Assembly: GCA_965644265.1 (NCBI GenBank)
Contig: OZ286467.1
Location: 1,116,001 to 1,180,000, forward strand
DNA from: Glycera tridactyla
Lineage: Eukaryota
Direction: 5' to 3'
Length of the DNA: 64,000 nt
Below the pieces are notes generated by a model. It made no database searches and had not been told where the DNA came from. It was given only the letters and a program-made list of their open reading frames with translations. Below, in pieces: positions 1 through 37,470 of this stretch (positions are counted from its first letter, which is position 1; every line of letters begins with the position of its first letter). Both the position numbers and the translations under genes were made by a program.

Positions 1-776
1 CATGTGGGCGGTCCTTCTCTAATAAGAAAACATTACAGAAGCACGTCCTGCGTCGCCATGGCGGCAACCGTATTTATCAGTGTCCCACGTGCCCCAAGAA
101 GTACGCCTGGCGTGGCGATCTGCTTTACCATTGTAAACGTCTCAAACATCCCATCCCGCACCCGTACGATCTCGGTGTCCGTTATGCGCGAGAGAATGCG
201 GTGAATTATTCGGACCTCGGTGAATGGTCTGATCTTGGCGAACAAGCTTTTCTTCCGCAATCTGGTGACTCTCAGGGGCCGGAGCAACCCATATTTCCCC
301 AAGCCGAGCCACTCTCAAACTATGGTAAAACGGAGGAGGGTCAATCTGCGGCGAGTGAAGGCAGCGTTTCCATGCTATCTCAACAAGCGTCTTTTCCCGA
401 ACTGAAAGCAGCTATCGATCAACCATGTTTTCCTGAAGCAATGCCTGTTGGCAGCAATAGCAATGTTTTCAGCATCCAGCCAATGAAATTACCCGTTAGT
501 GTTCCAGACGAATCCGTTCATGCTGAAAATGATTTGGATGATGATGTCATCAGAGGTGACAGTGCTCCGCCTCAAAACTGTTCAATTGAGATGGGTAACA
601 TGGCGGATCTCACGAAAAACGACATCTCCGACTCTCTTGGAGATTTGATGGATGGAACAAACGAACCAGAAAGTAGTTCCGATGTTGGCTTATTCAGCGA
701 GCTCAACATTAGCAATGTGCGATCAGTCGATCGTCTGTCTGGCGAAGATTCGAAAGAGCCGCCGCTAGTGTCATAA
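1..776 (+). CDS. Variable terminal exon V1 (5'-truncated by window edge): class A C2H2 finger pair plus long acidic/Ser-rich tail
   Basis: Reading from nt 3 gives CGRSFSNKKTLQKHVLRRHGGNRIYQCPTCPKKYAWRGDLLYHCKRLKH, continuing in frame into ORF 201-776; stop TAA 774-776. Acceptor lies upstream of the window. Confidence 0.88.
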   Translation, partial: CGRSFSNKKTLQKHVLRRHGGNRIYQCPTCPKKYAWRGDLLYHCKRLKHPIPHPYDLGVRYARENAVNYSDLGEWSDLGEQAFLPQSGDSQGPEQPIFPQAEPLSNYGKTEEGQSAASEGSVSMLSQQASFPELKAAIDQPCFPEAMPVGSNSNVFSIQPMKLPVSVPDESVHAENDLDDDVIRGDSAPPQNCSIEMGNMADLTKNDISDSLGDLMDGTNEPESSSDVGLFSELNISNVRSVDRLSGEDSKEPPLVS

Positions 777-1664
777 AAAGCATTTTCATGATCTTGGAAG
801 ACTACCGGAACGCTTTTCAGGGCGGATGATGCAGCTGTGAACAATTTTTCTACCGTCCCATTTTAGGGGCAGCAAGTATTAGTTGGTGTTTTTGCATTTT
901 TTGCTGCTTATTCTTCCAGATTTATCAAGCAGTGAGTTATCTTGTTAAATTGTGTGTGTGCGTGGTATATAGTGATTGTGATGGTTGAATCCACATGAAT
1001 TGTGTGGAGAAAATGTATGTATCTATTTATCCAATATTCCCCAAACTGATTGCTTACATGAATTTCAATTCTTCCTGGCTGCGGTTGTTACACAAGTTTA
1101 CTGTCTTCATGTTTCTTGTGATGGGATCTTGATTGGTTGGATTTTGAAGAGCAGGCTATAGACTGTTTATGGACCTCTCTAATTTATTTTTCTTCATTGT
1201 TATATGGTCAATTTCCCGGAAATGACAAAAAGTTTTCATTTCAAAAGTTGCTGTGATCTTGCAGGAAGTTTGAAGTCATATCCCTTTGAGAATATCTCTT
1301 GATTGGAAATTTCATACAGCAGATAATTTTGCTTTCCTTGTTGACATCACTCCTTCATAAAATTACCAAGACAAACTCCGAATACCTTATTTGGGCTGTC
1401 CCACTTGGCAGTAAATAGAGAAATCCCCATTCAAAGCACTTCAATCTCAATGAAACCATGTTTCACAATACACCAGTGAAATGCACAAATTACATTTTTC
1501 AGAAATCATCTGATTTCTCGTGGCTTTGAACCTGGGTTCCCCAGCATGGCACCAACCGCCTAGACTGTGCAGGAGCAAGCTGTCTTGTACGCTGAGCTAT
1601 GTGGACCACTCCAATAAAAGTGGATCTCCTCATACATTTGCTCTTACAGAGGTCCTGTTATGTC

Positions 1665-1886
1665 CAGGGCTCTACGCTAATAGTTGCCCTACTGGCACAG
1701 GCAGGCAGATTTGCTGTTAGGGCAGGTGATTTTATCAATCTGCCTGCCTGATGGGCAGGTACTCAATCATTATTTGGCCTATGATTATAGGCAGGAGGGC
1801 AGGTGAAAATGACTGGGAGGGCAGGTTGAAATTCTACTTCACCTGCCCGAAGGACAGCTGAAGAAAAAAGTTAATGTAGAGCCCTG
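1665..1886. mobile_element. MITE with CAGGGCTCTAC termini
   Basis: cagggctctac ... gtagagccctg; flanks tatgtc/tatgtg. Related internal sequence at ~21620-21720 and ~62075-62200. Confidence 0.65.
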
Positions 1887-3940
1887 TATGTGTGAAGATC
1901 ATTCAATTGTGAAAACTTTCACGGATGATTGGTCATCTAATCGATCTGAATCAATCTTCTCGTAAAATCAATCATCTGCTGATCACTGGTGTTGAGCTCG
2001 TCATTTCTGTCGGACTGTTGGTTGTTTCCTTTGAAATGGCAGTTGAACCTGCTCAAAAGGTCACAAGTGTACAAAAAGGCCACTTCAACAAATGCCTTCA
2101 TTAGCATTTCATACCATCAATGAAGGCTCCACGCAGGCTTGCTTTCTACAAAAACAGCTTTTTCTTATGACTGAAGATTGCTTTTGTAGACAGCTTCAAC
2201 TTTGATTGAACGTTTTTTGTCTCATCCCTCCTTCAAAGCAGGAATATTCAGTGGTGGCAGCTTCATATTCTTTTCTATACGTCTTTGTGAAATTCTTCTT
2301 CGTCTCAGAAGAGGGATTGTGGTCACAGGAGAGAGGGTGGTCAGTTTGGGGTATATTTTATGATGTTCATGTTACTTTTCTGTCTCTCCAGTTTTGTGGA
2401 AAGTTTACAAGAATGCTATTGTGCTTGTCCTGGTTTAGAATTTGATATTCCCAGCCGAAAGACAATCACAATTATTATTTTTTATCTTGTTAGTGCTTTT
2501 TCGATGTAATTGGAAGAATCTCAGAATGTGTGCGCTGCCTATTTGAGTAGTTGTGGGAATTGGTTTTGTTGTTAGGTTATGTTGTTATTGAAGTAGATCA
2601 TATATCTTTAGCAGATGTTTGTTATTGATCAGTGTTGATGGAAAAATTGGACTGCCATTCCCCTTTTGGGATATCAGAATAAATTGAACTTATCACTCTT
2701 CTGGAAGCAATGTCTCTCCTAAATTCGTTATGAAAGGTTCAACTAGTTGAAAAACTTGAGGCTGATATATTTGTGTGAATACATGCCTGATCAAGACTTG
2801 AATTATTTTGAGTCCCGCCAACCCAATTTTTGCCAATATTTTTTCCTCAGAATAATACATATGCGGGCATATATAAAGCCTCGTCGGAAACAGTGTTTAT
2901 TGGTGGTGGAGTCAAAGTTGTGATTTTCTGTCTTGGCAGGTAATGCGCTGCTCTCTCATCTGGGAAAAAAAAACTGTCCTATTGGAATTTTTGAGTTGCC
3001 AAATTAGAAGACTTATCGATGATCAAACAGTTGGTTTATTTTAAGCAGTCATTGACTATATTCAGCAAGAAAAGTCGATCATCATCAGAGATGTAATAGA
3101 GCATTTATACGGTGAAACCTGCATTAAGAGACCACCTCGCAATAAGAGACCACCTCCGAGGATTGTCCCAGTTCCACATGATATCTGGGCTTCCTATAGT
3201 ATCAGGCCTTGATGTTTTGTGTTGCTATATTTCCTAGGGCAATTAACATTTCATTCGGGTAGTCAGTACGACACTGTATGTCTACTTTGTTGTTCACGTG
3301 GAGGTCAGAATATCCACTTAATTTCATCACAATCAAATTGTGTTGTTCCCATAACAAACCCACCTGCCAGTCTGTGCCACATATATCCACCCTTATCTCC
3401 GCTGATTGTACGTTATTTTACCCCTCACTGCCATGATGGAAATGGATCCTGAGTTCAACTATCAGCGATTTCATGCCATTTTCCGGGGTAACCTGACTGT
3501 AAAGCCTTTTTTCTCTCTCGACTATATGGTGAAATATGATGGAATGGTGTAATCATGTCAGGGAACGTTTGTCACATTTTGTGCAAAATCATTCATCTTT
3601 CCCGAAAAGTGTGAACTGAAGAGAAGTCTATGATTTCCGCTACCCATGATCAGAATTAATACTGATATTTGTATGACTTATGAGGAATTCAATCCTCCTT
3701 TTGTGTGTGTGCATGCATGCGCATATGTGCATGCGTGTGTGCGTGCATTCGCTATGGAATGATGCAAGTATGGAAGAACGGAGGTAGGTTATCTCGACCT
3801 CTGTTAATCAGGTGTTTTCACGTCCATACTGGACTTGTAGCCAGGTCAAAGTTCAGGTGTATCAGCTGTGTATTTGATGGGTCGAAAAAGGGTAAATGCT
3901 GCGTGATGGTGACAGCCGATTTTGCTTTTGTGTGTTGCAG

Positions 3941-4243
3941 TCGGTGTGGCCGCCGTCCTCTTGGGTCGATGTCACGCTGTCACCCTCCGCAACATTACCC
4001 GTTTTCACAACAGGTCTTAAATCGCAGCGACTTCCGTGCAAACTTTGTGGTGATACCTTCTCACAGAAACAAGCATTGATGCGTCACCTTCTACGGCGGC
4101 ATGGTGGCAAAAAGGCGTACTGTTGCCCGGTTTGCGGGAAGGGGTATGCGTTGCGTGGCGATCTCCTCTCCCATATGAAGCGTCTGCTCCATTTACCAGA
4201 TGCGGGAGACCCACCGCCTGCGGGCTCGAATCCTGAAGGGTAG
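3941..4243 (+). CDS. Variable terminal exon V2: class A two-finger C2H2
   Basis: Acceptor ttttgtgtgttgcag ends at 3940, phase 0 (SVWPP...). CKLCGDTFSQKQALMRHLLRRHGGKKAYCCPVCGKGYALRGDLLSHMKRLLH; stop at 4243. Confidence 0.88.
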   Translation, partial: SVWPPSSWVDVTLSPSATLPVFTTGLKSQRLPCKLCGDTFSQKQALMRHLLRRHGGKKAYCCPVCGKGYALRGDLLSHMKRLLHLPDAGDPPPAGSNPEG

Positions 4244-4979
4244 TACATTCCAACAACAATAGAGGGCCTCATGGGCCAGTAAAACGTCAGGGATAGTAAT
4301 CGTGCGCATCTGCCTCTGGTGTGAAAAAAAACATCTGGGGTTTTTAAAAAAAGACACAGGTCAGTTCAGATAAGATTTTTAAACGGGATATGGAAATTGC
4401 ATAATGTAACGGAAGTACTCATCCTTTTTCCGAAGTCGGGAAATTGGTTTCTTAGCGAGTGTCTGAGGTTGGAAAATACACCGGTCTTGCTGGAATATGA
4501 AACTGGCTGCTATTTGGAGTTTTTTTTTCTGTGAAAATGTGATGGCTGGAGTGGTTGTTGTGGACAGGTGGTTGCTGTATTGAGGTGACTGCTTGGTGGA
4601 TATGTACTGTGTGGTGTTTTCCGGGTATTTCTTGTGAATTTTTGAGTGCCAAGTCTTACTGGTCTCTCTATCAAGACATGCCTGGAAACACGATGGAATG
4701 AGAGATTCACCAGAGGTCTGGATGTACTGGTTATATATGCATCCAAGTCGCATTTCTTTTCATATACAGAAGTAGTTTTAACTAGCTTCAGTAGGAATAC
4801 AGGGTACTTAATGCTGAGGGGCCAAATCGTGATTAGTTTGTATTTAGTTCACTGTACATGTACATACATTGATACATACATACAACGTTTTTTCGAGCAC
4901 TGCTTTGGGGAGGTGGCGGTTAGCCATTGTCAGTGTATATAGTGGAGATGGATTGGGTATATTTCGCAAGTTTTTGTTA

Positions 4980-5195
4980 TTGTGTGTGAATGTGTGTCCA
5001 TGTGGGTGGGTGTGGGTGTGGGTGGGTTGATGGGTGTGGGTGTCCATGTGTCTGCATGTGGTCATGTGAGTGTGTGTGTGTGTCTGCATGGGGTCATGTG
5101 AGTGTGTGTGTGCGCGTGTGCATGTGCGTGTGTGTGTGCGTGTGCGTGTGCGTGTGTGTGTGTGTGTATGTGTGTATGTGTGTGTGCGCTCGTGT
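4980..5195. repeat. (TG)n compound microsatellite
   Basis: Direct reading; similar (CA)n tracts at ~11320-11410, ~29960-30030, ~33155-33230. Confidence 0.9.
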
Positions 5196-6401
5196 GCAGC
5201 ATGATAGATTAGGGTTCGTGGTTAACATAGACCACTATGATCGAGGCATCAGAGATGCTACCTAACCTTATGATGATAATATACATCACATTACATTATT
5301 GATTTAGTCTTTTGTGATTTCATTACAAATACTGTCCACACCAGTGTCAAAATAGGTGTGATTAACGTTTGTTCCATCAGGTCATGTGAGAATGATGTGA
5401 ATCAGATTATATGATGAAATACTTGGATCAGAACATAACCGCTACTCTATTCTACACGATCTCCTTCAAACATCAAGCATGAATCATTGAATGGACTTAC
5501 TGAATCTCTATTTGTTCATGTTGTGTAATACGAAAAAAGATCGGATGTCTTGCTGATTGCATCGGATTATTTCAACCGGCCTGGCCAGCTAATGAGGGTG
5601 GGGGCGCTGATTAGGGAGAATACGGTATGTGTGTTGCCGGTAGATATCTCATATTGGATAGAAGGAATGGTCAATGGTGCTTAAGATTGATATTTCACAT
5701 TTTTTGTTTGTTACAAGTTGTACCTTTGGTGTATGAGGTTTCATGTGTCTGAATGTTTTGTGAGGACAGAACTGACTATTCATTACCAGAGATGCCGCCA
5801 GGCCGCGCGATCGCGGGATGCTCGCGATTCCTCCATCATCGCCCGCGCTCCATGAGCATCACTGCGTGAGCGAAAACGCGATATCCCGCGATTAGATTCA
5901 GCCAGTGCGCGGACAAAAATCGAGAAATATGCGGAAAACGTTAGTCATTTCTTTAAACACAAACGATATTCGGCCATCTTGATCGAGAACTGCGCAGCTT
6001 TTGCCGTGAGACTCGTGAAAACGTCTTCTGCGCATGTTGTTTTTCGCGTTAGTTCCCGATTATTCCGCGATGTGGCGCTGTTCGCTTCTTGGTTGAGGCA
6101 ATCGCAGCGCCATTCGGCTCGTAGTGAGATTAATGCGAACTATCGGCAGCTTCGTTTTGGCGCGAAAATTTGAATGCTAGTATGGTGAACGTGTCAGATT
6201 GACTAAGCACCCAATCAGTGAGTGGGGTTATTCCAATAATAGTCAAACCTGCTCAAACCACCTTCCCTAAAAGACCACTTTCCTACAAAAACCCCTTTTT
6301 TCATCCAACCAGTTGCAATGATTTAACATACTTTTTTCAAACAAATTTTATTTGATTTCTATTTGAATTGGCTATAGTGTTGTACAATTTAATGTCATAA
6401 T

Positions 6402-7683
6402 CAGGGCTTGGAAAAATCCGTGTTGCATATAACACGCACGTATTCGCACATTTGACGTTTTAACACGGATCGCACCATTAACGCGATTTTTGCAGAACAT
6501 GCCAATGAAAACTCGGGGAAAACAAGAAACGGGTTGAATTTCAGCCGCATAAATCTCATATTCACTGACAATAAGCGTGAATAACGCAAGAAACGTCTTG
6601 TCAACAAGACGCGCCGCCATCTTGGTTTTTCTTGTATCGTTTGAAATCACGCGGCCAACGTGACCAAAACAATAATAATTCGCCGAAATCTGTACTAAAA
6701 AGCATCAGATTTTCGAATATTCACTATAATTCCTATAGGAATCTGGTTCTTTGCTTAGATTTCACGTTTGAAAGCATTAAAATGAAAAATAATAATTTTT
6801 CGACGAACCCTCGCCGAATCACGTTCGAAGTCACGTCCTCGCGAGATTTGAAAATAAATATTAAGATCGGCGATTTTCTCGCAGAATCAGACGAATTACC
6901 TCGAGTTGGCTTTCATACAGTCAAGATAGGCTACTGATCTTTCGTTTTGCTTGCGATATGAGATGCAAACGTGTCTTTATTGTGTATGAAAGCGCCATTT
7001 CCGGCCGCTATTTGTCTCTTATCAAAAATTCCAAGATGGCGCCCGATATTAGACTAGCCGTGATCTGCAGTCAATCCCTCGCGATTTTCTCGCAGAATCA
7101 GACGAATTACCTCGAGTTGGCTTTTATACAGTCAAGATAGGCTACTGATCTTTCGTTTTGCTTGCGATATGAGATGCAAACGTGTCTTTATTGCGTATAA
7201 AAGCGCCATTTCCGGCCGCTATTTGTCTCTTATGAAAAATAACCGAGATGGCGCTCGATATGAAACCAGCCTTGCTCTGCAATGCAATTTTTCAGTTTAC
7301 GGTATTACCACAAGATTCGCATAATCCCACAAAAAAATCACAGAAAAAACAGAACATGGACTTTAAAAGAACAGAAAACGCAGAACTAGATGTTTTTTGC
7401 TTGCACGGAAAATGCAGAACCATCAGGTTTCAACACAGAAAAAACAGAATTGGTCATGGTGCGGAGAACACCGAATTTGAAGTTTTTATCGCTTACAAAA
7501 TGGAAAGTAAGGAAATTCAGCGATATTTTGTGCGTTTTAATCAAATTTTAGCGCATATTTCACGGAATTTCAAGTTTTGTGCATAGAACACGGAATTTTC
7601 GCTGAAAAAAAAGGATAACACATAAAGTGCCAAAAAATAAAACAGAATTATTGATTTTTTAAAATGGATTTTTCCAGGCCCTG
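6402..7683. mobile_element. Non-autonomous TIR DNA transposon (CAGGG ends, hAT-like)
   Basis: 18-bp TIR cagggcttggaaaaatcc / ggatttttccaggccctg (1 mismatch), flanked by CATAAT on both sides; internal ~211-bp direct duplication (6870 and 7081). Confidence 0.75.
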
Positions 7684-9629
7684 CATAATACGACTTCTAG
7701 ATATTAAGAAACGTTCCTGAAAATTGGAAATGAAGATCCCCCTCTTCATATGTCAGATCCCCCTCATCTCAGAAGTCTGGGGGGGAAATCCCCCTCCGGG
7801 AAAAAATCCTGGAAGCATCTCTGCATTACTCAGTGGTGCCATTTTTCCGAAAATTGTTGGAATTCTGAAAATTTGGTGAAAATTGGATTTGAGAAATTGT
7901 CAAAAATCTCGCTGTAAGTTTGAGAATCGCTACTTTGAGAACCGCTACTTTTGAGAGAATATTGAGGTAGTTCACTACCACACCTGTTACCCGGTACAGT
8001 TTTCGGTTTGGGACTCTCTCCCCCCCCCCCCCCTCCCCCCCCCCCCCCCCACATTATAGACAATACTGTCGTCCATTTTATGGAACGATTTGCGATGTTC
8101 ACCTCACACTGTAAATGGGCAGCCATTTGTAAATGACCTGCTATAGAATCACCAGTATTAACCCAAACTGCATGGAAAATAAGCGATTTGTGTGAAAAAC
8201 ATTAGTGATTTCATGATGAAATACTGCTAAACTTGGATATTTTAGATGCATAATTGTGTGAGAACATTGAGAAAAAAAATAGTTCAGGAAAAGCGCCACC
8301 TGGCATGCAAAGGTAGCACCGTTGCGGTGGAAGCCCCTCTGTAACATCGTTAAACGCCAGCAAACATGGCGCGTGGGGAAGAAGTTGCCTTTTGATTGAT
8401 TGATGTGTCTTGATAACACCCTTGGAAAGCTCCAATTTCCAACTTCTGCTCTCCAAATGTCCTGACCGTTGGTCAACCAGCCCCAGCCTCAGGTAGCTGG
8501 CACATTCGGGGGGAAGTTGAACAAAAAAAAGGTAACTATTGGCCATGATATCCCCAAGATCGGGGAGTGGATCACAGCCTATTTTGATTGACCCATTGAG
8601 ACATTTTGTGAAGAAATGGCCTTGAAATTCTGGATGAAACCACATTTGGTAAAATTTGCCAGATTATTACTGCAGGGATAGCTTTGTGCAAGTTAGAAAT
8701 GTGCATGCCCAGAGGGCACACAAAATTCAAGATACTTTGTAAAGTTGATATTTCAGGGCACATAGGAAGGCGATTTGGCCCAACAGAACTGTATCAATGG
8801 GCCTAGCAGACCTTTATATCTTCCCTAGTTCGGGAAATCCCCCTCACATCGGGTTGCCATCAATATTGAGCCTTTTGTTGATTGATCCACTGGATAACGG
8901 TCTTTTTACCAATAATCTCAAAACCCTGCTCGATGAAGGTTGAAATATGGGAGAAATAATGCTTCCATTATTGACATCAGAGGAATCTCAATCAGCATAT
9001 ATCAATGTCTGTATATGTCGTCTCCGCTGGTTTTCCATGTGAGTTTATTGTTGAGCATTTCCACTGTGTGGTTGAATAAAATGGGATGAATATATGGAAC
9101 CTGTCTTGTGTTATCTGCGGTCAAACCTGTGCGGGAAACCACCCCTGTAAGGAGGCCACCTGGGCTGAGATGATATTTTCTACGGTGAACAACCTCACTA
9201 CCACAGCCTACTGTAAATCTGTCACATTCAACAAATATTTTTGTTATGCACTCCACATTTGATGAATTTTTATCTGGCCAGCTGATCAGTGAAATGATAT
9301 AATTTGCTGGCCCGGCACCTTGATTTTACTGGCCCCGGTGCAGGCTGGCGAGTGCTGGTTTTTCACACTGCACGGGGCATCACAGCAAAATTTATCCGAG
9401 TATCGTGAGACTTTTGCTTTGAATAGTTCCAATGGATCGGCACGGAAATACAACCTTGTTTCTTGAATATCTGTGAAAATATCTTGTAGAAGAATTCACG
9501 GTAATCACAGATTCAAATCTACCAATTTATGGCTTTCAGACCCGACTCTCAATTGAGGGTCTACGATTTTGCAAAGCAGAGTAAGCTGCAGCTGAAATTC
9601 TGATAGTTTTGTTTGCGTTTCTGTTGTAG

Positions 9630-10046
9630 ATGCTCAATAATGAGGCAGCCATCTTTGCCTTAGACATCAGTCAGTTTCTGCGACCTATGCATCCTAAACC
9701 AGGTCCCGAGCATCGCAAATTCCCATGTTCCGATTGTGGCGATTCCTTTGTACAGCGCCACCATTTGTTGCGTCATAGGCAGAGAAAGCACGGCGGTGTG
9801 CCACGTTTCAAATGTCCCGCGTGCACTAAGGCGTATGCCGTTAAAGACGACCTGATGTTTCACTGTACTCGCACTGGGCATCCTAAACCACAGCACTACG
9901 CGCAAAATCCACCCATATCTCAGAACGAGAGCGAGACATGCCCCGCGAGAGTCTCTCAAGCAGATATCCCACAGAGGACATTTCAAAACCCACCGATTCC
10001 TACTGCCATCATCCATCATTCACAATTTGAAAGCTGGAATATGTGA
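9630..10046 (+). CDS. Variable terminal exon V3: class A two-finger C2H2
   Basis: Acceptor gtttgcgtttctgttgtag ends at 9629, phase 0. CSDCGDSFVQRHHLLRHRQRKHGGVPRFKCPACTKAYAVKDDLMFHCTRTGH. Confidence 0.88.
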   Translation: MLNNEAAIFALDISQFLRPMHPKPGPEHRKFPCSDCGDSFVQRHHLLRHRQRKHGGVPRFKCPACTKAYAVKDDLMFHCTRTGHPKPQHYAQNPPISQNESETCPARVSQADIPQRTFQNPPIPTAIIHHSQFESWNM

Positions 10047-11442
10047 AAAACTGAAGGACGTACCAGGAATGGGATCTGCAGATTTCAGTGTGGTGAGGGG
10101 CAACTGTAGCTAGTGTATACTAGTGTTGGCAATCGATTATAATCAGTTTGCAACATTGGCACCACACCCACTACCTTGTTTCACCAATGTTTTTTCTCCA
10201 GAATCATACTTATGCTCAAGTGTATCCAGAGAAGTTTCCTAGGATATAGGGTTTGTTATGGGTGGAGCAAGATGACAGCATTTTGACTTCAAAGGAAATC
10301 CATAGCTTTTTTCATCGAAAAGGCTGGATTTTCCATTGATATATATATATATATATATACAACAGGGTTTTCCCCAGAAAAAAATCACAGCCGGCTGCAA
10401 TTTTCGTCGACAGGAGGGCGGTACCGGAGTCAGTTCCTCGATTCAACACCAGATGGTGATTTTTCTTTGGTTCTCGATTCTGCCTCTAGGTGGCACTTTT
10501 CATTGGGGGCTGTTCAGAACTTTAAGAAGGAGTTTTTCTGTTTCTGGAGAAGGAAACCCAGCCAAGTGAGATAGAGATACTATTGAGTAGATGAAAGATT
10601 AATTGCTCTTCCAATTAAATGTTTTGACCCAATCTCATGAATATTTAATATAGTTTGCTGAAGAAAGATGCAATATCTGTGGGCAATTTTGGTCCAATTG
10701 CAAGATTTTCTGAGTGAAGTGCTATTGGAAACTTTGAAAGAAATGCATGGAGACAAGTTCAGACTAGCCCGAATCAAACACACTAAATAATACATTGCTC
10801 AGCAACATCAATTGGGGGGGGGGGGGGGGGGCAGCTCACCTCAAAATGTAAACAGTGACCTCATTACATTTTGTCTCAGACAGGAAGTGATAGTCTGCAC
10901 TAACTCAAGGGAAGTGAGCTGCTGCCTAAACTGTGTTACATAAACAATTTGCCGGGGCCCAGATTGCCACTACTAATCCACATCCCAATGATCTGACTGA
11001 CCAAGAAACTGCCGATTACATCAGCCCATCTGTCAAATTGGTGCGTCCGGCTGTTTCAGCCGCTCGGTTTTAATTATAGCCGACGCAGTTGCCGGCTGCA
11101 GGTGTCTAGGGAAATCCCTGTATACATACATGTGCTGACTGTTCCGATTAAATAGATTCCACATATCTGCAATCGATTGTCTATTTGGCCACGAAGATCG
11201 ATCGATAATCGGATAATAATCAATAATTGTGACACCACTAGTGTATACACATGAGGGGAAAGAGGATGGTATAATGAGTATTTTGGGTTTTAGATCATCA
11301 AAAATAGTGATGTTAGAGCACACACATACTCACAAACACATACACACACACATGCACGCGCACGCACACATACACACACACACATACACACGCATACATA
11401 AACACACAAAAGTTGATTTAATCAATCAAATAGAATACAATA

Positions 11443-11624
11443 TACAGTCGAACCTCCTCTAAAGACTACCTCTCTATAAAGACCACCTCCCCATAAAACC
11501 ACCCTGAGCTGCGACCATGGGAGTATTTTCAACAGTGAATAACCTCTCTATAAAGACCACCTCCCTATAAAGACCACTTTTTTTATCTGACCGAAGGCGG
11601 TCTTTATAGAGAGGTTGGACTGTA
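11443..11624. mobile_element. TA-flanked MITE family 1 (Tc1/mariner-type ends, TACAGTCGAACC...GGTTCGACTGTA)
   Basis: TIRs plus internal ataaagaccacc repeats; the most abundant element in the window. Confidence 0.75.
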
Positions 11625-12405
11625 TTTTAGATTGGTTCTGACATTGTATATGTGAAGGAGATAGCAGAGACTATAACAGAAAGAAGAGAGAACAGTGATG
11701 ATAATATAGCAAGACTATATGGCCTTGAAGTAAAAACACAATACCAAACATGGTGTGAGTTTCACTGTATGTCACTAGACCGAAGGGGAAATTCACACTG
11801 AGTTTGGTATTGCGTTTTTACCTCACAGTCATACAGTCTTGCTTTTATCACATGGATTAGGGGAGAAATCGACAAAAAGTTGTTCTCTCCCAGCTGTGAA
11901 GTATAAAACTCGATACTCAACACCTGATACTTCACTGAAAATGGCACATCACTGTGATAACAGACTCCACCATGTTGTGATGAATGTATAACTGAACAGA
12001 ATCAGAACTGAGATGCACTCAACTGTGACTATTCTTCTTTTGTCAGTATGCACTTTCTAATGGTTAGTGTGCACCCAACTCCCCCTTTCTCCCCTCCCCG
12101 GATGCATGTACCATTTGCAAAGCTCAGTCTGAGTCTTCCCTGAAAGTGAATGCAAGCAGGTCGTTGCTATCTTGATCACAATGCAACTATCTATGTATAT
12201 CGCAGAGAAGAGCACTTTACGCTGATTATTTTGGATTTTAGATCATGAAACTCAGTTGATTGGGTTTCTCGGTCCACAAAATCTTGTTGTGAATCGCCTC
12301 TGGTCAGCTTTTCAGGGTTTCGGTTGTGAGCTAATCACATCCCTGATTATCGAAATGTGTATATCTTGGCTTGTTGGGCTGATGGACTGTCACTGTGTGT
12401 TGCAG

Positions 12406-12693
12406 ATGCCGTTTGGCAGCATCCACAGAATCGAGCCCCAACTGGATAGTAACTCCGCGGTGCGCTACGTAGCCGTGCCGCTTTCCGACATTCCCGAATT
12501 TCCATGTCCCTCTTGTGGCCAGAAATTCAAGCAGAGTCATCACATGAAGCGACATTGGTTGCGGAAACATGGCGATCGTTCCCGCTACCCGTGCCCCACC
12601 TGTGAAAAGTCGTACGCGGTTGCCGAGGATCTAGTCTCGCACTGTCGCCGTCTCGGTCATTTCGCCATGGACAATGATCCACCAGCCTCCTAG
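12406..12693 (+). CDS. Variable terminal exon V4: class A two-finger C2H2
   Basis: Acceptor ctgtgtgttgcag ends at 12405, phase 0 (MPFGS...). CPSCGQKFKQSHHMKRHWLRKHGDRSRYPCPTCEKSYAVAEDLVSHCRRLGH. Confidence 0.88.
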   Translation: MPFGSIHRIEPQLDSNSAVRYVAVPLSDIPEFPCPSCGQKFKQSHHMKRHWLRKHGDRSRYPCPTCEKSYAVAEDLVSHCRRLGHFAMDNDPPAS

Positions 12694-13150
12694 CCATTAG
12701 ATAGCAGTTGTTGATGTTTTTTGGTCCACGAAATCTTGATTAGAAGTGTCTCCATTCAGGTTTTTTCAGGGGTTTTGGTTACCAGCAAGACACGTCCCTG
12801 GAATCTGGTGGCCCTACATTCAACAAATAATTGGGTGTGGAAAATTTGAATTTAGAAATTGCAGCATTATGGCTGGACGTTGCAGAATGGACACTTTTGA
12901 GAATATGTGGGAGTAGTATAAGTGACTACAATATAGCATTTTCTACAATGAACAACCGAATGTCATCTGTCTACTAGGACCACCTTTGGCTGATCATGGT
13001 CTTTATAGACAGGTTTGACTGGATGATGAACCATCAGCTTTTCAAGCACTTTCAGATGTTGCTGAAAGGAACAACACACAAACTGAAAGTATGTGAAATC
13101 ATTCATAGAAACAAATAGAGATGGTACTAATTTCAATTGGCTGATCGACA

Positions 13151-14033
13151 TTCTGAGATTGTGTGATACAACTGGATAAAGTGGCATCTTGTGTTTCTGA
13201 GAATGTGTGATACAACTGGATAAAGTGGCATCTTGTGTTTCTGAGATTGTATGATACAACTGGATAAAGTGGCATCTTGTGTTTCTGAGATTGTATGATA
13301 CAACTGGATAAAGTGGCATCTTGTGTTTCTGAGATTGTGTGATACAACTGGATAAAGTGGCATCTTGTGTTTCTGAGATTGTGTGATACAACTGGATAAA
13401 GTGGCATCTTGTGTTTCTGAGATTGTGTGATACAACTGGATAAAGTGGCATCTTGTGTTTCTGAGATTGTATGATACAACTGGATAAAGTGGCATCTTGT
13501 GTTTCTGAGATTGTGTGATACAACTGGATAAAGTGGCATCTTGTGTTTCTGAGATTGTGTGATACAACTGGATAAAGTGGCATCTTGTGTTTCTGAGATT
13601 GTGTGATACAACTGGATAAAGTGGCATCTTGTGTTTCTGAGATTGTGTGATACAACTGGATAAAGTGGCATCTTGTGTTTCTGAGATTGTGTGATACAAC
13701 TGGATAAAGTGGCATCTTGTGTTTCTGAGATTGTGTGATACAACTGGATAAAGTGGCATCTTGTGTTTCTGAGATTGTGTGATACAACTGGATAAAGTGG
13801 CATCTTGTGTTTCTGAGATTGTGTGATACAACTGGATAAAGTGGCATCTTGTGTTTCTGAGATTGTGTGATACAACTGGATAAAGTGGCATCTTGTCTTT
13901 CTGAGATTGTGTGATACAACTGGATAAAGTGGCATCTTGTCTTTCTGAGATTGTGTGATACAACTGGATAAAGTGGCATCTTATGTTTCTGAGATTGTGT
14001 GATACAACTGGATAAAGTGGCATCTTGTCTTTC
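13151..14033. repeat. 44-bp minisatellite, ~20 copies
   Basis: Unit ttctgagattgtgtgatacaactggataaagtggcatcttgtgt; runs into the V5 acceptor. Confidence 0.95.
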
Positions 14034-14043
14034 TTGCTTGCAG

Positions 14044-14463
14044 AGGGAAGGCTCACTGTATTGTTCACACTGTACAGTCCCACTCACACACCGGGATGAG
14101 TTGGATGCCCATATTATGCAAGCCCATCCCGGTCTCACCATCACAGACAGGAATACGTGCAAGTTCTGCGGTGCTTCATTTGCGTGCCGCCAAAACCTCC
14201 GTCGACATGAAGCACGCAAACATGGTGGCCCAAAAGTGTACAGATGCCCTGAAGCCAAATGCGGCAAAATGTACTCCTTGAAAGAGGACTTACTGTTTCA
14301 TATGCGGCGTTCAGGACATAGTCCACACATGTTGCGACCCCCGGTGGAAGTGAACACTTCACCAAATACTCACGGGTTTGATCAGCATCTTGGGCAAATG
14401 CAAGAGCCAGTGCTACCCAATTTTCAGGGTGACAGGAGCTCAGATTTTTTGTCGCGCAAATAA
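14044..14463 (+). CDS. Variable terminal exon V5: class A three-finger C2H2
   Basis: Acceptor tctttcttgcttgcag ends at 14043, phase 0 (REGSLYC...). Fingers CSHC..HIMQAH, CKFC..HEARKH, CPEAKC..HMRRSGH. AATAAA overlaps the stop (14459-14464). Confidence 0.88.
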   Translation, partial: REGSLYCSHCTVPLTHRDELDAHIMQAHPGLTITDRNTCKFCGASFACRQNLRRHEARKHGGPKVYRCPEAKCGKMYSLKEDLLFHMRRSGHSPHMLRPPVEVNTSPNTHGFDQHLGQMQEPVLPNFQGDRSSDFLSRK

Positions 14464-14560
14464 ACATGACTGGATCCATGGTGCAGGGATAGGAGTGTTC
14501 TGTGGATGGGTCACTTTTCAACTGGAAAATTGTGAATGTATCTCACTTAACTGATCATTA

Positions 14561-14870
14561 TGTCTCCCCCCCCCTGATGGGGGAGACATATAGAATTCGT
14601 ATTGTCCGTCTGTCCGTCTGTCCGTCTGTCCGTCTGTCCGTCTGTCCGTCTGTCTGTCACAAAACCTTGTGAGCACGATTGCAGCAAAACTACTCATCCG
14701 AATTGGATGAAATTTGGAGGGCATATCCCTTGGGATAGTCCAATGAACTGATTAGATTTTGGTCCATGTGACATAATTTTCAAGATCACCAGAGGCCTAA
14801 ATTTCACCAAAATTTCACCAAAGAGGTACCAACCTTAATTAAACTCAGTCCCTATTGTGACCTTCCCGAA
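14561..14870 (+). mobile_element. HINE-like element 5' portion (probably continuing past the gap to ~15700)
   Basis: tgtctcccc...ggggagaca short inverted repeat followed by (GTCC/GTCT)n, as in the 25386 element. ggtcaaaggtcaaggtcac motif near 15665. Confidence 0.55.
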
Positions 14871-15001
14871 ATGAACTACTTCTGTTGCCTCTCCATGAAT
14901 GGTTATGTAACATTCTTCCGGTCATACAATGCTCCTTGGTTATGCTTCAATGACTTCTGGTTGATTTCATCTCCCCTCTCTCCTCAAACAAAAGCCCAAA
15001 A

Positions 15002-15146
15002 NNNNNNNNNNNNNNNNNNNNNNNNNNNNNNNNNNNNNNNNNNNNNNNNNNNNNNNNNNNNNNNNNNNNNNNNNNNNNNNNNNNNNNNNNNNNNNNNNNN
15101 NNNNNNNNNNNNNNNNNNNNNNNNNNNNNNNNNNNNNNNNNNNNNN
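15002..15146. other. Assembly gap (others: 23922-24190, 30063-30419, 33278-33648)
   Basis: Runs of N. Confidence 1.
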
Positions 15147-16469
15147 TGGCTACCATACTTGTGATATTGGTATCCAATTGCTGTTAGCAATTTGAGAGTT
15201 ATGGCTACACCCCCCCCCCCCCCCCACCCCCTATTGGTTGGGTGGTCGAAAGAAATGATGGTTTCCGTACAATAACTTCATGAATCTCAGGGCTTGCTGT
15301 CTCAAACTTTGTGTACCTTCTTTCCTAGACTATAGATTTACATCTTGAATTTCAAGGTCACTGAGTGCAAAATTGTTTTCCGGACAATGATTTCATGAGT
15401 TTCGGGGGTAGCCTTCTCAAACTTGGTGTACAGCCTCTCATAGACTATGGCAACACACCCATCTATTTTTTAGTGGCCATCTTCAATTTCAAGGTCACTT
15501 AATGGAAAATGGTCAAAAGAGTTTCTGGACAATCACTTCATAAATTACAGGGGTGGCTTTGACAAACTTGGTGTACAGACATTCCCAGGCTATGGCAAGA
15601 TTTTGGGGTTGCCATCTCAGTGTGCATCTACAGGCTAGTGGTGATACACAGGTATGGTGCCAAAAGGTCAAAGGTCAAGGTCACACAAGCTATTTTCAGA
15701 ATTTGAGAATATGGACAAATCTCACTTGGTGAATTGTTCTAGTTTCCTGGGTCACTGATCAAGACCTTGTCAGCAAGATTCCACTCAAACCCCTGACCCA
15801 AATTCAACTGAACTTCTCTGATGCCTGGGCATATTCTCGAGGACAAATCCTACACAAGAAGACCCCCCCCCCCCCCCCCTGTACCCCAGTACACCTCATA
15901 CCCCAGGACACATTTTCATACTCATGACTAGGTATACTACATCATTGGTCACTCAAAGGATAGTTGTCAACCAATGATGTCTAGCTTTTCAGTGCGCATG
16001 CTCACTTGAAGATGAATAAGCAAGCAGGTGGACCCAGGCATGTATGCAGGTAGTGAATAATTACAAAGTCTGGGGGAGACATATTGAGTGAGGAGGTGCC
16101 TCACTAAAATTCTAGTTTGATGCAGCTGCTGTATGAATAAAAAAAACCTTGAGGTCTGCAATGCATTTTTTTCTCTCAAAAAAATTTTGATTTCAGGCTG
16201 AGCAGTGACCGCAGGAGTCGAATTCCCAATTTTAAATTTTGAATGAGCTATGATCAAATTTTGTGAAATGCTGGAGGATATAATTTATATTTAGAAAAAC
16301 AGATTCTGAAATATTCTGCTATGAGGATTTGCCGAATGGGGGAATATTTGCTCAGTGTTGTTTTAGTTATAGACATTTATTTTTTGAACATCGCCATTTT
16401 TCTCGAAATATATGTTGGGACTTGTTGGTGTGTATTCTGATTGGAGTGTTCGTCTGCCTTCCCTTGCAG

Positions 16470-16745
16470 AGACTATGCGTCAAGTGTGGAACCAGGTTCA
16501 GTTCGTCTTACGCTCTATCAGAACACCTGGCAGCTGTACATGGCAAAAGACATTGCGTCTGTCCAGAATGTGGCGATGCGTTCGCTTGCAAGCAAAACTT
16601 GAGACGTCACCGAATGCGGCGTCACGGCGGTGTCAAGTTGTATCAATGCCCAGAATGCGTTTACAGTTACGCGATCAAGGATGATCTTGTGTTTCACTGC
16701 CGCCGCCTTAGACACCGCTTGCCCGACAACTGGGGCATTGGATAA
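16470..16745 (+). CDS. Variable terminal exon V6: class A three-finger C2H2
   Basis: Acceptor ctgccttcccttgcag ends at 16469, phase 0 (RLCVKC...). Fingers CVKC..HLAAVH, CPEC..HRMRRH, CPEC..YAIKDDLVFHCRRLRH. Confidence 0.88.
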   Translation, partial: RLCVKCGTRFSSSYALSEHLAAVHGKRHCVCPECGDAFACKQNLRRHRMRRHGGVKLYQCPECVYSYAIKDDLVFHCRRLRHRLPDNWGIG

Positions 16746-17366
16746 AATCACCAGGTGGCGGTTCACTACTGCATTTCACCTTCATTTAGGAACCCATGAG
16801 GATGAGACTTGAATGATTCAACCAATGCATATAGCCTAGGTGTCTCAATATAGCCCAGATGGTACTTATAGCACTGCCATGAGATTGAACTTGAATGCAG
16901 TCTGATATGTCTACTTTTTACATTCATGGTCTCCCAGCGGCCTTTCCTGTGCTATTTTCACATTATCATCAATTATTTAGTATGTGTTAGAGGTGTTTAT
17001 GAACTGCCAGATATATCCACTTTACAACCATTCTAGTTCCCCACCTTGTTGCGTTCAGGGGTTGTGTGAGTGATGTCTGCAGAGGGGACAGAATATTCCA
17101 CTGTCATAGATGAGGAACACATGGCATACATAATCCACTGGGCCGACACATGCTGTTAAACTCTAATATATCAATCAATCATTTGGTCGATCACATTAAC
17201 AGTCTTTCCCAACTGAGTCAGGTAGCTCTCAATTCAAATTATGTACAAAATGTCTGATACTGATTGGGACTGAACAGTAATTTAAACATTGATTTATGTG
17301 ATATTTGAATCAGAGAATAATAACTAGTGAATATATTCACTCATAGACTGCTCATTGTGATTGCAG

Positions 17367-17660
17367 AGTTTTGTTACAACCACCTGGGACAGCTGGCTAA
17401 GTCAAGGGTCTCCGTCTGTAGGCCAGAAGCAAATGAGCAAGGTTGATAAACGACGAAAATTCCAGTGTATGATTTGTGGCGACCTGTTTGTGCAGAAAGT
17501 TTGTGTGCAGAAGCACATGTTGCGCAAGCACGGCGGAGAGCGTACCTTCAAGTGTACGCAGTGCGAGAAAACTTATGCTTGGAAATTTGACTTGATGAAC
17601 CATATGAAACGTACGGGACATGTGACTCGGGACGCGTCACTCGGTAATCATCTGGCGTAG
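17367..17660 (+). CDS. Variable terminal exon V7: class A two-finger C2H2
   Basis: Acceptor ctcattgtgattgcag ends at 17366, phase 0. CMICGDLFVQKVCVQKHMLRKHGGERTFKCTQCEKTYAWKFDLMNHMKRTGH. Confidence 0.87.
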   Translation, partial: SFVTTTWDSWLSQGSPSVGQKQMSKVDKRRKFQCMICGDLFVQKVCVQKHMLRKHGGERTFKCTQCEKTYAWKFDLMNHMKRTGHVTRDASLGNHLA

Positions 17661-17675
17661 GATTACACGCTGCAG

Positions 17676-18085
17676 GACCACAGATTTGGACAGAATGATC
17701 ACGAGATTCTGATTTTATAACCCATCTGATAGCTCAGCTGACCACAGATTGAAACTGAATGATCACGAGATCCTGATTTTATAACCTATCTGATAGCTCA
17801 GCTGACCATAGATTTAGACTGAATGATCACGAGATCCTGATTTTATAACCTATCTGATAGCTCAGCTGACCATAGATTTAGACTGAATGATCACGAGATC
17901 CTGATTTTATACCTATCTGATAGCTCAGCTGACCACAGATTTAGACTGAATGATCACGAGATCCTGATTTTATAACCTATCTGATAGCTCAGCTGACCAC
18001 AGATTTAGACAGAATGATCACGAGATTCTGATCTTATAACCTATCTGATAGCTCAGCTGACCACAGATTTAGACAGAATGAGCTA
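17676..18085. repeat. ~64-bp minisatellite, ~6 copies
   Basis: Unit gaccacagatttagactgaatgatcacgagatcctgattttataacctatctgatagctcagct, starting just after the V7 stop. Confidence 0.92.
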
Positions 18086-18410
18086 AACACACTGAGATTC
18101 TCATATTCTGGGAAGTAATGTCTCAGATGGACTGCAGATTTCCATGTTCTTTAGTTACCATCTTTCTCCTAGTGTTGTAAATCTTCTGTGGCGAGGATCA
18201 AATAAACCAAACTATGTAATGAAATGTTCTCGTATGCGAGGAAAGTTGAATCTTGCTCCTCTGTGGGCTTGATGTCATTCGTTTCTGTTCGGTTCTTCGA
18301 CTCTTTACTTAGATTGCTTGGCAACATGTAGTCGGGGAGAATGACTTGGACATAAATATGATCGGAGCTGTATTCTCTGGTTGTTGTAAGCATTCTTCCG
18401 TCCTTTAGAG

Positions 18411-18728
18411 AGAGATCTCATCTCATCACCAGGGGGGAGTTCACATTTTCAAAGAGCTGGTCGGCTTCATGCTGCAAACAGTCGTGAAATGACTCCTATC
18501 AAAAGCACTGGCAGATACCCTTGTTCATTTTGCAATGAAAGCTTCACGCAGGCTAGCAATATGCGACGTCATCAGCAGCGTCGTCATGGCAGCATTAAGA
18601 GGTTTGCTTGTTCCACTTGCCCGTTGGGGTATGCATGGAAGGGCGATCTTGTTGCTCATTGTAAACAGCTGGATCATGTACCACAGATTGCCCAATATCC
18701 CATGAGTCAGTTGCCCAATATCCCATGA
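18411..18728 (+). CDS. Variable terminal exon V8: class A two-finger C2H2; acceptor uncertain, possibly degenerate
   Basis: Open frame 18390-18728 encodes CSFCNESFTQASNMRRHQQRRHGSIKRFACSTCPLGYAWKGDLVAHCKQLDH. The position matching the V9 acceptor reads TGTAA instead of TTTAG. The only phase-0 AG found is tcctttagAG ending at 18410. Confidence 0.7.
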   Translation, partial: RDLISSPGGSSHFQRAGRLHAANSREMTPIKSTGRYPCSFCNESFTQASNMRRHQQRRHGSIKRFACSTCPLGYAWKGDLVAHCKQLDHVPQIAQYPMSQLPNIP

Positions 18729-19035
18729 GTCAGTTGCCCAATATCCCATGAGTCAGTTGCCCAATATCCCATGAGTCAGTTGCCCAATATCCCATGAGCT
18801 AGTTGCCCAATATCCCACGAGCAAGTTGCCCAATATCCCACAAGCGAGTTGCCCAATATCTCATGAGCAAGTTGCCCAATATCCCATGAGCGAGTTGCCC
18901 AGTATCCCATGAGCGAGTTGCCCAGTATCCCATGAGCAAGTTGCCCAATATCCCATGAGCGAGTTGCCCAGTATCCCATGAGCGAGTTGCCCAGTATCCC
19001 ATGAGCGAGTTGCCCAGTATCCCATGAGCGAGTTG
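18688..19035. repeat. 23-bp minisatellite, ~15 copies
   Basis: Unit gttgcccaatatcccatgagtca; starts inside the V8 coding tail. Confidence 0.93.
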
Positions 19036-19143
19036 GTATAGATCCAATCTTGGTATCTGTCCAGTGGCATGATGCCTGTCCATTAATTTCACCCAATGAT
19101 ACGCCATATATCTCGGTGCTTTTATTTTTCACCATAAGTATTT

Positions 19144-19309
19144 TACAGTCGAACCTCTCTATAAAGACCGCCCTCGGTCACATAAAAAAAGTGTCCTTCA
19201 TAGGGAGGTGGTCTTTATGGAGAAGTCATTTACTATTGAAAATACTACCACAGTTGCAGCTCAGGGTGGCCTTTATAGAGAGGTGGTCTTTAGAGGAGGT
19301 TCGACTGTA
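19144..19309. mobile_element. MITE family 1 copy
   Basis: tacagtcgaacc ... ggttcgactgta. Confidence 0.8.
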
Positions 19310-19538
19310 TATGACATGTGCCAAGCTATTTCACTGCCAAGATTTCTCCCGTCCTTGTATTAGCTGATGATCACATTCTTCTGGATGATGAAATCGGGAT
19401 TGATTTCCTGTAGAAGACAAGCAACCAGCTGGATACATCGCTGTCATGCTTCAAAATATATGCTGCATGATAGGATGGATTCTTACAAATTTGGGAAGAC
19501 GCAATTATGATAGGAGTTGTATTTTCTGGTTGTTTTAG

Positions 19539-19826
19539 GCATTCATCAGTCCTTTAGAGACACCACCTATGCCACCATCTGGGAGTTCATATTTTCAAAG
19601 AGCTTGGTCTCATCCCGCTCAAAGCACCGGCAGGTACCCATGTATATTTTGCGATAAGAGTTTCACTCGATCGGGGAGCTTGCAGCGCCACCAGCAGCGT
19701 CGACATGGTGGTGTTAAGAGGTTCGCATGTTCCAGTTGCTCCTTGGCGTATGCTTGGAAAAGTGATCTTGTCGCCCATTGTAAACAGCTGGGTCATGTGC
19801 CACAAAGTGATCTCAAAATTCCATGA
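19539..19826 (+). CDS. Variable terminal exon V9: class A two-finger C2H2, close paralogue of V8
   Basis: Acceptor ttttctggttgttttag ends at 19538, phase 0 (AFISPLETPPMPP...). CIFCDKSFTRSGSLQRHQQRRHGGVKRFACSSCSLAYAWKSDLVAHCKQLGH. Confidence 0.87.
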   Translation, partial: AFISPLETPPMPPSGSSYFQRAWSHPAQSTGRYPCIFCDKSFTRSGSLQRHQQRRHGGVKRFACSSCSLAYAWKSDLVAHCKQLGHVPQSDLKIP

Positions 19827-20560
19827 GCAAGTTGGTATGAATCCAGTCTTGGTGTCCATCAATGGACCTGATGCATGCCAATCTATTCAACTTGATTACC
19901 TGACATGACTTGTGATTACCGCTATTGTTTTGACGGATGCAAATAATGATCTGATTGCCAATTACAAAATCCAGTCGGATCAATCAGCACTAGTCATTGC
20001 GATCATGGATCACCAAAATAAACTTTCGTGAGCAGAGTGACCCGAGAAATATCAAGCATTTGTTGAAAATGATGAGTATTGTCTACACCTCAGGTCTCCA
20101 CTTTGGCCAAAATAGGAGCTGGCTGGAACAATTAGGAGCCCAATGCTTGAAAATAAGTCATTAGGACCGAATAAATGATACATACCTGTGCTGACGGGAG
20201 TTTCCTCCTCACAGGTTTGAAGATGGGATGTCCGTATCCTGAATGATTTCTTTACAAATCGAGGAAGAATTTGCCCGCTAGCCTCCACGGCTGTAGAACC
20301 TGACGGTGATTCAGACACGACTTCTGCCAACATACGTCTTTTCTTTACGAGTTGAAACAGTTGAGATTTATTGAGCTCACATTCTGAATGATAACATTCA
20401 AATCCTCGTCATCTGTTTGTGTAGCGCCCTCGCAAAAACTCTTTGGAATATTTGCGCAGAAAGTGTGAAATAAGGCGTGGCATTATCATGATGGGTCTTA
20501 TTTGGTGATTGTGGGATCAAGCTCTGCTGGTAGTCGATGCACAGTGAAGGAAAATGACAG

Positions 20561-20726
20561 TACAGTCGAACCTCCTTATAAAGACCGCCTTCGGTCGCAC
20601 CAAAAAAGTGGCCTTTATATGGAGGTGGTCTTTATAGAGAGGTCATTTACTGTAGAAATTACTACCACGGTCGCAGTTCAGGGCGGTCTTTATAGAGAGG
20701 TGGTCTTTAGAGGAGGTTCGACTGTA
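20561..20726. mobile_element. MITE family 1 copy
   Basis: tacagtcgaacc ... ggttcgactgta. Confidence 0.8.
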
Positions 20727-20997
20727 TATTTATTCTTCAATATAAGCATATAAGGTGGTCATGAAGGAGAACTGATAATTGTATTTTAGATTGCCAAAAA
20801 CTAAATTGTGTCAAATTGTCACTGGATTATCTCCAAATGACTGCTGCCATCTTTTCCTGATTGAATGCTGTCTGAAGTTTAGAGAGAGTGATACATAGGA
20901 GTGGTGAAAAACCTGCATGACGTTTTTAATTGTGGTTGAATAGGCGAGGGAGCGAGTAAATGTTGCTTGCACTGACATGACTTTATTGTCTTTGCAG

Positions 20998-21273
20998 GCT
21001 GTGTGCCCTGTGTGTAAGAAAGCTTTTGGTCGGCCAGACGCTCTCCGGAAGCATTATCGCGAGGTGCACCTCCGCATGAGGAAATTCTTCTGCCAGCAAT
21101 GTCAGATTAGTTTCGGGCAGAGCATAAATTTGAAACGACACATGATGCGTCGTCATGGTGGACAACGCATTCATGCATGCACACAATGCGAGTTCTCGTA
21201 TGCACTCAAAGAAGATCTCTTGGCACATCTGAAACGAACCGGACATGTTCTCCAGCCTAATCAGGAGTCATGA
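20998..21273 (+). CDS. Variable terminal exon V10: class A three-finger C2H2
   Basis: Acceptor ctttattgtctttgcag ends at 20997, phase 0 (AVCPVC...). Last finger CTQCEFSYALKEDLLAHLKRTGH. Confidence 0.88.
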   Translation, partial: AVCPVCKKAFGRPDALRKHYREVHLRMRKFFCQQCQISFGQSINLKRHMMRRHGGQRIHACTQCEFSYALKEDLLAHLKRTGHVLQPNQES

Positions 21274-37130: not shown

Positions 37131-37470
37131 GAGTACCACCTGCCTAATAAAGCCACTTTTTGATGCGACCGAAGACAGCCTTTATAGACAGGTTTGACAG
37201 TAACTTGATCATGATTCCCAACAGAGCAGTACCAGATGGGCCCTGTACACATATGGACAGGCTATGACATGTACCAATGATGTTCAGCTAAGCACTTTCA
37301 TCTGTTCGATATTGTGAAAATAAAATAAGAGATTGTTGCAAACGCGTTGCTTGAACAGCAGGTGAATGATGTTGAACAAAATTGCCGGTCAACCCCTTGT
37401 ACAGCCACAACACATGATCACCTCATGCACTAGATTCTGTGCTTCATGTCCTATTTTTCCATTATTGCAG

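Follow-up and report, generated by a model that had tools for sequence, protein, structure and literature searches.

Positions 1-21273 of the 64,000-nucleotide stretch of Glycera tridactyla contig OZ286467.1 analysed here (the window) carry, on the + strand, ten short cassettes, V1 to V10, each of which encodes an adjacent pair of Cys2His2 (C2H2) zinc fingers. With a probability of roughly 0.55, these cassettes would be anciently duplicated and selectively maintained alternative 3'-terminal exons of one gene, each swapping the C-terminal DNA-binding module of the encoded protein. This module would consist of two C2H2 fingers in ordinary tandem arrangement, or of three in V5, V6, and V10, and the constant exons of the gene would lie upstream of the window.

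The fingers were located by a pattern scan of the six reading frames and of the stop-to-stop frames of the window. In this region, C2H2 fingers were found in ten places, in every case as an adjacent pair within an open frame that reaches a stop codon shortly after the second finger (10/10). A profile built from the ten cassettes and run against every stop-to-stop fragment in six frames recovered ten + strand matches of 93–111 bits, whereas the next-best matches, of 20–22 bits, belong to a different three-finger class at 22.5, 53.2, and 59.2 kb. Because 93–111 bits stand against approximately 22 for the next best, the cassettes are a discrete group, and the same search detected no decayed cassette copy in the readable sequence of the window. 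Seven of the ten are two-fingered only; in V5, V6, and V10 the pair is preceded by a third finger, and each of these cassettes gives three Pfam stretches.

Regarding their type, all ten pairs conform to the consensus (F/Y)-x-C-x2-5-C-x3-(F/Y)-x5-hydrophobic-x2-H-x3-5-(H/C), and the cassette fingers are matched by Pfam zf-C2H2 and zf-C2H2_4. Both fingers end in His, with H-x4-H in the first and H-x5-H in the last, so that the pairs are C2H2-C2H2; the accepted C2H2 consensus ends in H-x3-5-(H/C) and covers the H-x5-H spacing (PMC3668361). A C2HC reading of the last finger, suggested by a Cys directly behind its first His, was rejected because that Cys is replaced by Met or Leu in four cassettes, while the His after x5 is invariant.

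That the cassettes would act as alternative exons is well supported by their sequence. A predicted polypyrimidine-AG acceptor with a score of at least 8.4 and in phase 0 immediately precedes the coding part in seven out of nine cassettes, against 0.16 per cassette expected from the window's own density of such acceptors (binomial P ~7e-5), and the frames of V3 and V9 open exactly at the predicted AG. The distance from this AG to the first finger is 6–18 bases in the three-finger cassettes and 96–102 bases in the two-finger ones, except for V4 (189 bases). These acceptors also bear on another interpretation, according to which the cassettes would be a tandem family of small independent genes, each encoding a two-finger protein of 80–150 residues. 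Such an interpretation could draw on the in-frame ATG found upstream of the fingers in 7 of 9 cassettes, and on the lack of an RNA junction tying the cassettes to a common exon in three low-coverage, DNA-like runs. However, upstream ATGs are about as frequent as expected by chance, and the strong same-phase acceptors directly ahead of the coding parts, two of them coinciding with the opening of the frame, argue against independent genes, as does the fact that all the cassettes share a strand and belong to an array extending into further finger classes and frames without fingers. Independent genes are therefore considered very unlikely.

The proposed exon array is best compared with that of Drosophila lola (and also of fruitless, tramtrack, and Broad-Complex), where alternative 3' exons swap C-terminal finger pairs on a common BTB N-terminus. 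As in lola, the cassettes would be short end exons in tandem on the same strand, with their own stop codon and one or two (sometimes three) C2H2-type fingers, and they are old paralogues differing at base-contact positions. Lola isoforms with different C-terminal fingers have been shown to recognise different motifs (PMC3668361, PMC11426971). However, lola pairs, compared here by description only, have been described as C2HC followed by C2H2 (PMC1947980), unlike the C2H2-C2H2 cassettes (H-x4-H, H-x5-H), and a BTB exon is not seen within the window, whose start cuts V1. Furthermore, the splicing or trans-splicing of the cassettes to a common donor is a prediction. Multi-isoform TTK-type BTB factors have been reported to be arthropod-specific (PMC11426971).

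The pairs show, in every detail, the sequence features that a previous sequence-only reading of this DNA had listed for them. The common motif H-x2-R-[RK]-H-G-x4-[YFH]-x-C is present in all ten, and the penultimate finger (the first of the pair) carries at positions -1/+2/+3/+6 the residues that had been listed, from V1 to V10: NKTK, QQAR, QHHR, QHHR, CQNR, CQNR, QVCK, QSNR, RGSR, and QINR. These contacts are typical of base-reading fingers, with Arg or Lys at +6 in 10/10, Gln, Asn, or Arg at -1 in 8/10 (mostly Gln), and Asn or His at +3 in 6/10, and their variation falls mainly on +2 and +3. The last finger reads Y-[AS]-hydrophobic-[KRA]-x-D-L-x2-H-x5-H in every cassette, with an invariant Asp at +3 and neither Arg nor Lys at -1 or +6 in any of the ten.

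The description of the last finger as fixed holds for its framework and for positions +3 and +4, but not for -1, +2, and +6, which are as variable as the contacts of the penultimate finger. Its -1/+2/+3/+6 strings (WGDY, LGDS, VDDF, VEDS, LEDF, IDDF, WFDN, WGDA, WSDA, and LEDA, from V1 to V10) are all distinct, ten against the eight of the penultimate finger. The idea that a single finger tunes the specificity is accordingly true only in part: the penultimate finger does vary at its base contacts, but the last one varies at least as widely in terms of distinct strings. In the last finger, Asp at +3 is a typical residue, while Trp, Leu, Val, or Ile at -1 and Tyr, Phe, Ser, Ala, or Asn at +6 are atypical for base reading.

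The conservation of helix positions follows a complementary pattern in the two fingers: the first one keeps R/K at +6 and mostly Q at -1 and varies at +2 and +3, and the last one keeps D at +3 and L at +4 and varies at -1, +2, and +6. The mean pairwise identity at positions -1, +2, +3, +4, and +6 is 0.36, 0.09, 0.16, 0.49, and 0.64 in the first finger, and 0.22, 0.16, 1.0, 1.0, and 0.16 in the last. In terms of mean entropy, the first finger exceeds the last both over the four contact positions (1.82 vs 1.55 bits) and over the helix (1.78 vs 1.27 bits), although the difference in variability is not significant for either the contact positions (one-sided Mann-Whitney P = 0.33) or the helix (P = 0.15).

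The age of the cassettes is reflected in their synonymous sites, which are saturated. The mean proportion of synonymous differences (pS) is 0.84, and the synonymous substitution rate (dS) is undefined in most pairs, so that the ratio of nonsynonymous to synonymous rates (dN/dS) could not be computed across V1–V10, since pS is above the saturation limit in most of them. The invariant residues use all or most of their synonymous codons, as in the case of Leu +4 of the last finger (6/6), Arg of the R-[RK]-H motif (4/6), and Asp +3 (both), and the zinc ligands that fall within the window are intact without exception (79/79). Saturated synonymous sites, spread codon use, and 79 intact ligands together point to old copies under purifying selection at the protein level, and the codon diversity and the intact ligands exclude that the conserved motifs stem from recent duplication, gene conversion, or a signal at the nucleotide level.

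Only one grouping is supported in a tree of the cassettes, that of V8 with V9, the youngest duplicate pair (dS 1.47, dN/dS 0.11), and it is here that the predicted excess divergence of the penultimate recognition helix is seen. The proportion of nonsynonymous differences (pN) in this helix is 0.41, compared to 0.06–0.12 elsewhere in the pair (Fisher P = 0.009), about four times the remainder, with 6 of 7 positions changed, against 1 of 7 in the helix of the last finger; this divergence does not exceed synonymous change. Across the ten cassettes, the helix variability of the two fingers does not differ significantly, and the two old pairs V3/V4 (both QHHR) and V5/V6 (both CQNR) show the opposite, since their penultimate contacts are identical, although encoded by different codons, and the last-finger helix differs at 4/7 and 3/7 positions, respectively.

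The sequence-only reading had further proposed that the last finger may be structural or mediate protein interaction. None of the analyses favoured such a role: the linker, the modelled fold, and the nearest solved fingers all look like those of ordinary tandem DNA-binding fingers. The linker H-G-G-x-[KR]-x-[YF] aligns gap-free, residue for residue, with the canonical H-T-G-E-K-P-Y found in the solved structures of Aart, ZNF568, CTCF, ZBTB proteins, and the consensus finger. Of its seven residues, the second Gly is kept in 8/10 cassettes and the basic residue in 8/10, and the canonical Thr, Glu, and Pro are not conserved. V3 was modelled with AlphaFold, with predicted local distance difference test (pLDDT) values of 86–92 over both fingers, and the best structural matches of the model are DNA-bound finger pairs, namely pairs within CTCF and the two-finger modules of BCL11A (zinc fingers (ZF) 2-3), SALL3 and SALL4 (ZFC4), and ZNF217, on which the model superposes at 1.8–2.7 Å over 51–57 residues. 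The cassettes share with these modules the canonical C-x2-C-x12-H spacing, a linker of seven residues, and, in the model, the fold and the mutual placement of the fingers; the K-x-D-L helix occurs in DNA-reading fingers as well. On the other hand, they differ from them in the hydrophobic -1 and non-basic +6 of the last finger, identity is limited to 28–37%, and DNA binding by the cassettes is a prediction. When a profile of the last finger was compared with solved structures, the closest were the DNA-reading K-x-D-L fingers of Aart, the consensus finger, ZBTB48, and ZBTB20.

These comparisons weigh on the alternative that only the penultimate finger reads DNA, the last one being a structural cap or an Ikaros/Hunchback-type self-association finger common to all isoforms of this class. 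Several features would suit such a role: Asp +3, Leu +4, and H-x5-H are invariant, no basic residue occupies -1 or +6, -1 is always hydrophobic, and the last helix of V8/V9 has changed far less than the penultimate one. The last finger also shows weak, sub-threshold matches to the plant BIRD-IDD third finger in Pfam (PF22995, expectation value (E) 1e-4 to 5e-3) and a match to JACKDAW 5b3h at E 0.05, the BIRD-IDD third finger being part of a protein-binding fragment. The Ikaros/Hunchback dimerisation fingers are C-terminal C2H2 fingers, and the last Ikaros finger has, according to the sequence-only reading, the H-x5-H spacing and an acidic +3. However, ten different contact strings, variable at three of the four contact positions, are unexpected for a common interaction surface, and the pair has the linker and, in the model, the geometry of tandem fingers bound to DNA. 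Among the best 60 of 107 solved matches to the last-finger profile, the Ikaros family is represented only by ZF2-3 of Ikaros and Helios (DNA-binding or degron fingers, E >= 0.014), and no Ikaros-family C-terminal finger is included. A single zinc finger, moreover, rarely binds DNA stably. The comparison with Ikaros fails in terms of architecture: there, a two-finger interaction module stands apart from the N-terminal DNA-binding fingers (PMC5071621, PMC9741631), whereas the last finger of the cassettes is joined by a canonical linker to a typical DNA-reading finger. In addition, the C2H2 consensus allows H-x3-5-H, and aromatic residues at -1, which can specify bases, have been associated with base preferences in Drosophila fingers (PMC3668361). 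A capping or self-association role of the last finger thus appears quite unlikely.

A related proposal, in which the last finger is conserved for binding RNA or a common cofactor while the penultimate finger and flanking basic residues contact DNA, is highly improbable. C2H2 fingers are able to bind RNA or proteins (PMC3668361), and the last finger has a hydrophobic -1 as well as conserved Lys/Arg at +1 and within its H-x5-H loop, which would be compatible with such a function. Nevertheless, no specific likeness to an RNA-binding family was detected, the weak zf-C2H2_jaz or zf-met matches falling on other fingers only, and the canonical linker and tandem geometry count here too.

Under the favoured reading of the cassettes as alternative end exons, we infer, at about even odds, that both fingers contact DNA, most likely in the major groove, with base preferences set by their helices. 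Given that seven of the ten cassettes have only two fingers, the last finger is probably needed for stable binding. The contacts common to the family (in the first finger, Arg/Lys at +6 and, in most cassettes, Gln at -1; in the last, Asp at +3) would face, according to the canonical recognition model, neighbouring bases of one six-base site and so define a shared core. The remainder of the site would be tuned by the positions at which isoforms differ, namely +2/+3 in the first finger and -1/+2/+6 in the last, so that the cassettes would read a family of related sites with a common core, rather than ten unrelated ones. A broader version of this model, unlikely though conceivable, holds that the array was built outside arthropods, independently of lola, as a "split code" in which the central contacts are fixed and both fingers vary at the flanking ones, giving graded, related sites; in that case, isoforms might also pair on DNA through the last finger's hydrophobic -1 face.

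Should splicing follow the proposed scheme, a single gene would give rise to at least ten transcription-factor forms, whose shared-core DNA-reading parts differ in both fingers. They would then offer a naturally varied set in which to study how the specificity of two-finger modules arises, and an example of isoform diversity resembling that of lola but based on another finger type, perhaps outside arthropods. The last finger must not be treated as a constant part, and tests of binding and selection must cover both fingers.

Several observations weigh against the interpretation of the cassettes as alternative DNA-binding end exons. With regard to DNA binding, the combination of a hydrophobic -1 (W/L/V/I) and a non-basic +6 is uncommon among base-reading fingers, and the net charge of the last finger is only 0 to +5, compared to +3 to +6 for the first. 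With regard to splicing, the constant exons are outside the window, canonical poly(A) hexamers follow the cassettes at background density (none after V4, V6, and V8), and only three public runs match parts of the stretch, as low-coverage DNA-like contigs without splice joints. Moreover, V8 does not hold the acceptor kept by V9 (TTGTAA/GCATTC in V8, TTTTAG/GCATTC in V9), in spite of upstream regions that are 76% alike (18349-18434 vs 19498-19583); only a weak AGAG at 18407-18410 could restore its frame, and V8 may be either a recently disabled exon or a user of this weak site.

The cassettes also found no relative in any protein or contig search, and the protein searches retrieved no annotated isoform. 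Word-index searches of proteins returned nothing for the cassette alignment, for a 480-residue downstream frame, or for the V1 finger region; the acidic tail of V1, used as a non-finger query, gave 0 matches in an exhaustive search of 1.84 billion representative proteins; metagenome scans with V8/V9 and last-finger patterns yielded no confirmed locus; and an ESM Atlas search returned generic C2H2 clusters only. Length windows, possible swamping by multi-finger proteins, and the sparse sampling of this species constrain these searches, whose negative outcome does not establish the family as unique.

Table 1. Coordinates of the ten cassettes, their fingers, and the assembly gap within the window.
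Feature	Stop-to-stop frame	Span	Strand	Extra finger	Finger 1	Finger 2	Remarks
V1	3-776	3..776	+		3-59 (partial; first Cys-x2 missing)	81-149	Truncated by window start; profile match 93 bits
V1 tail			+				208 residues, acidic, after finger 2; stop at 774-776
V2	3896-4243	3941..4243	+		4037-4102	4124-4192	Predicted phase-0 acceptor AG 3939-3940; profile match 106 bits
V3	9630-10046	9630..10046	+		9726-9791	9813-9881	Predicted acceptor AG 9628-9629; profile match 104 bits
V4	12226-12693	12316..12693	+		12505-12570	12592-12660	Predicted acceptor AG 12314-12315, alternative at 12404
V5 (three fingers)	13993-14463	14044..14463	+	14062-14127	14158-14223	14245-14319 (C-x4-C)	Predicted acceptor AG 14042-14043, closing a 44-base minisatellite
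Assembly gap (N)		15002..15146	.				Between V5 and V6, outside every cassette
V6 (three fingers)	16284-16745	16470..16745	+	16476-16541	16560-16625	16647-16715	Predicted acceptor AG 16468-16469
V7	17361-17660	17367..17660	+		17466-17531	17553-17621	Weaker predicted phase-0 acceptor AG 17365-17366
V8	18390-18728	18390..18728	+		18522-18587	18609-18677	Tail enters 23-base minisatellite
V9	19539-19826	19539..19826	+		19641-19706	19728-19796	Predicted acceptor AG 19537-19538
V10 (three fingers)	20944-21273	20998..21273	+	21004-21069	21091-21156	21178-21246	Predicted acceptor AG 20996-20997

The assembly gap between V5 and V6 lies in repetitive DNA, 539 bases past the V5 stop and approximately 1.3 kb ahead of the predicted V6 acceptor, and is flanked by a (TGTCCGTC)n microsatellite and by poly-C and 77-base repeats. 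The cassette borders nearest to it are at 14463 and 16468. As no cassette frame reaches the gap and no partial profile match adjoins it, its continuity is irrelevant to all the cassettes, although a further one may be hidden inside it.

The sequences between the cassettes contain repeats, and a comparison of the upstream regions revealed local minisatellites and the V8/V9 homology, but no intron element common to all of them. The 44-base minisatellite (13019-14154) comprises about 25 copies that are 98–99% alike and its end falls exactly within the polypyrimidine tract that belongs to the V5 acceptor; every unit holds a pyrimidine-rich stretch followed by CTGAG, which results in some twenty acceptor-like decoys ahead of V5. 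Long - strand frames at 12963-14267 were discarded as an artefact of this minisatellite. The 23-base minisatellite at the tail of V8 (within 18642-19104) is present as a single copy in V9 (19814-19834). Other elements include high-copy interspersed repeats at 16896-17243, 19000-19330, and 20550-20730, whose depth is in the thousands in three low-coverage runs, and a pair of 60-base repeats, 87% alike, which follow V1 (1702-1761) and V10 (21607-21666).

Beyond the ten cassettes, the window holds the three copies of the second, three-finger class (22523-22768, 53117-53340, and 59125-59358). All three keep an unusual last finger, C-P-x2-C-G-F-S-T...H-x4/5-C; the middle finger keeps R-x-D-x-L-x-R-H, and the first one varies. 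Two paralogous non-finger frames, basic and helical, are found in the same array and strand (37366-38112 and 40190-40786); they share YYQRKLKKMTPLQIQQFRE... and RRRAA-x-RLR, and have no Pfam match. The 480-residue frame (48343-49785) contains a segment of about 110 residues that is duplicated internally, with a C2H2 finger at the end of both copies, and a further, third finger; no relative of 264–840 residues was found for it in the word-index protein search. Finally, a reverse-transcriptase-like frame of 406 residues (27773-28993), apparently derived from a retroelement, is located inside the array between assembly gaps.

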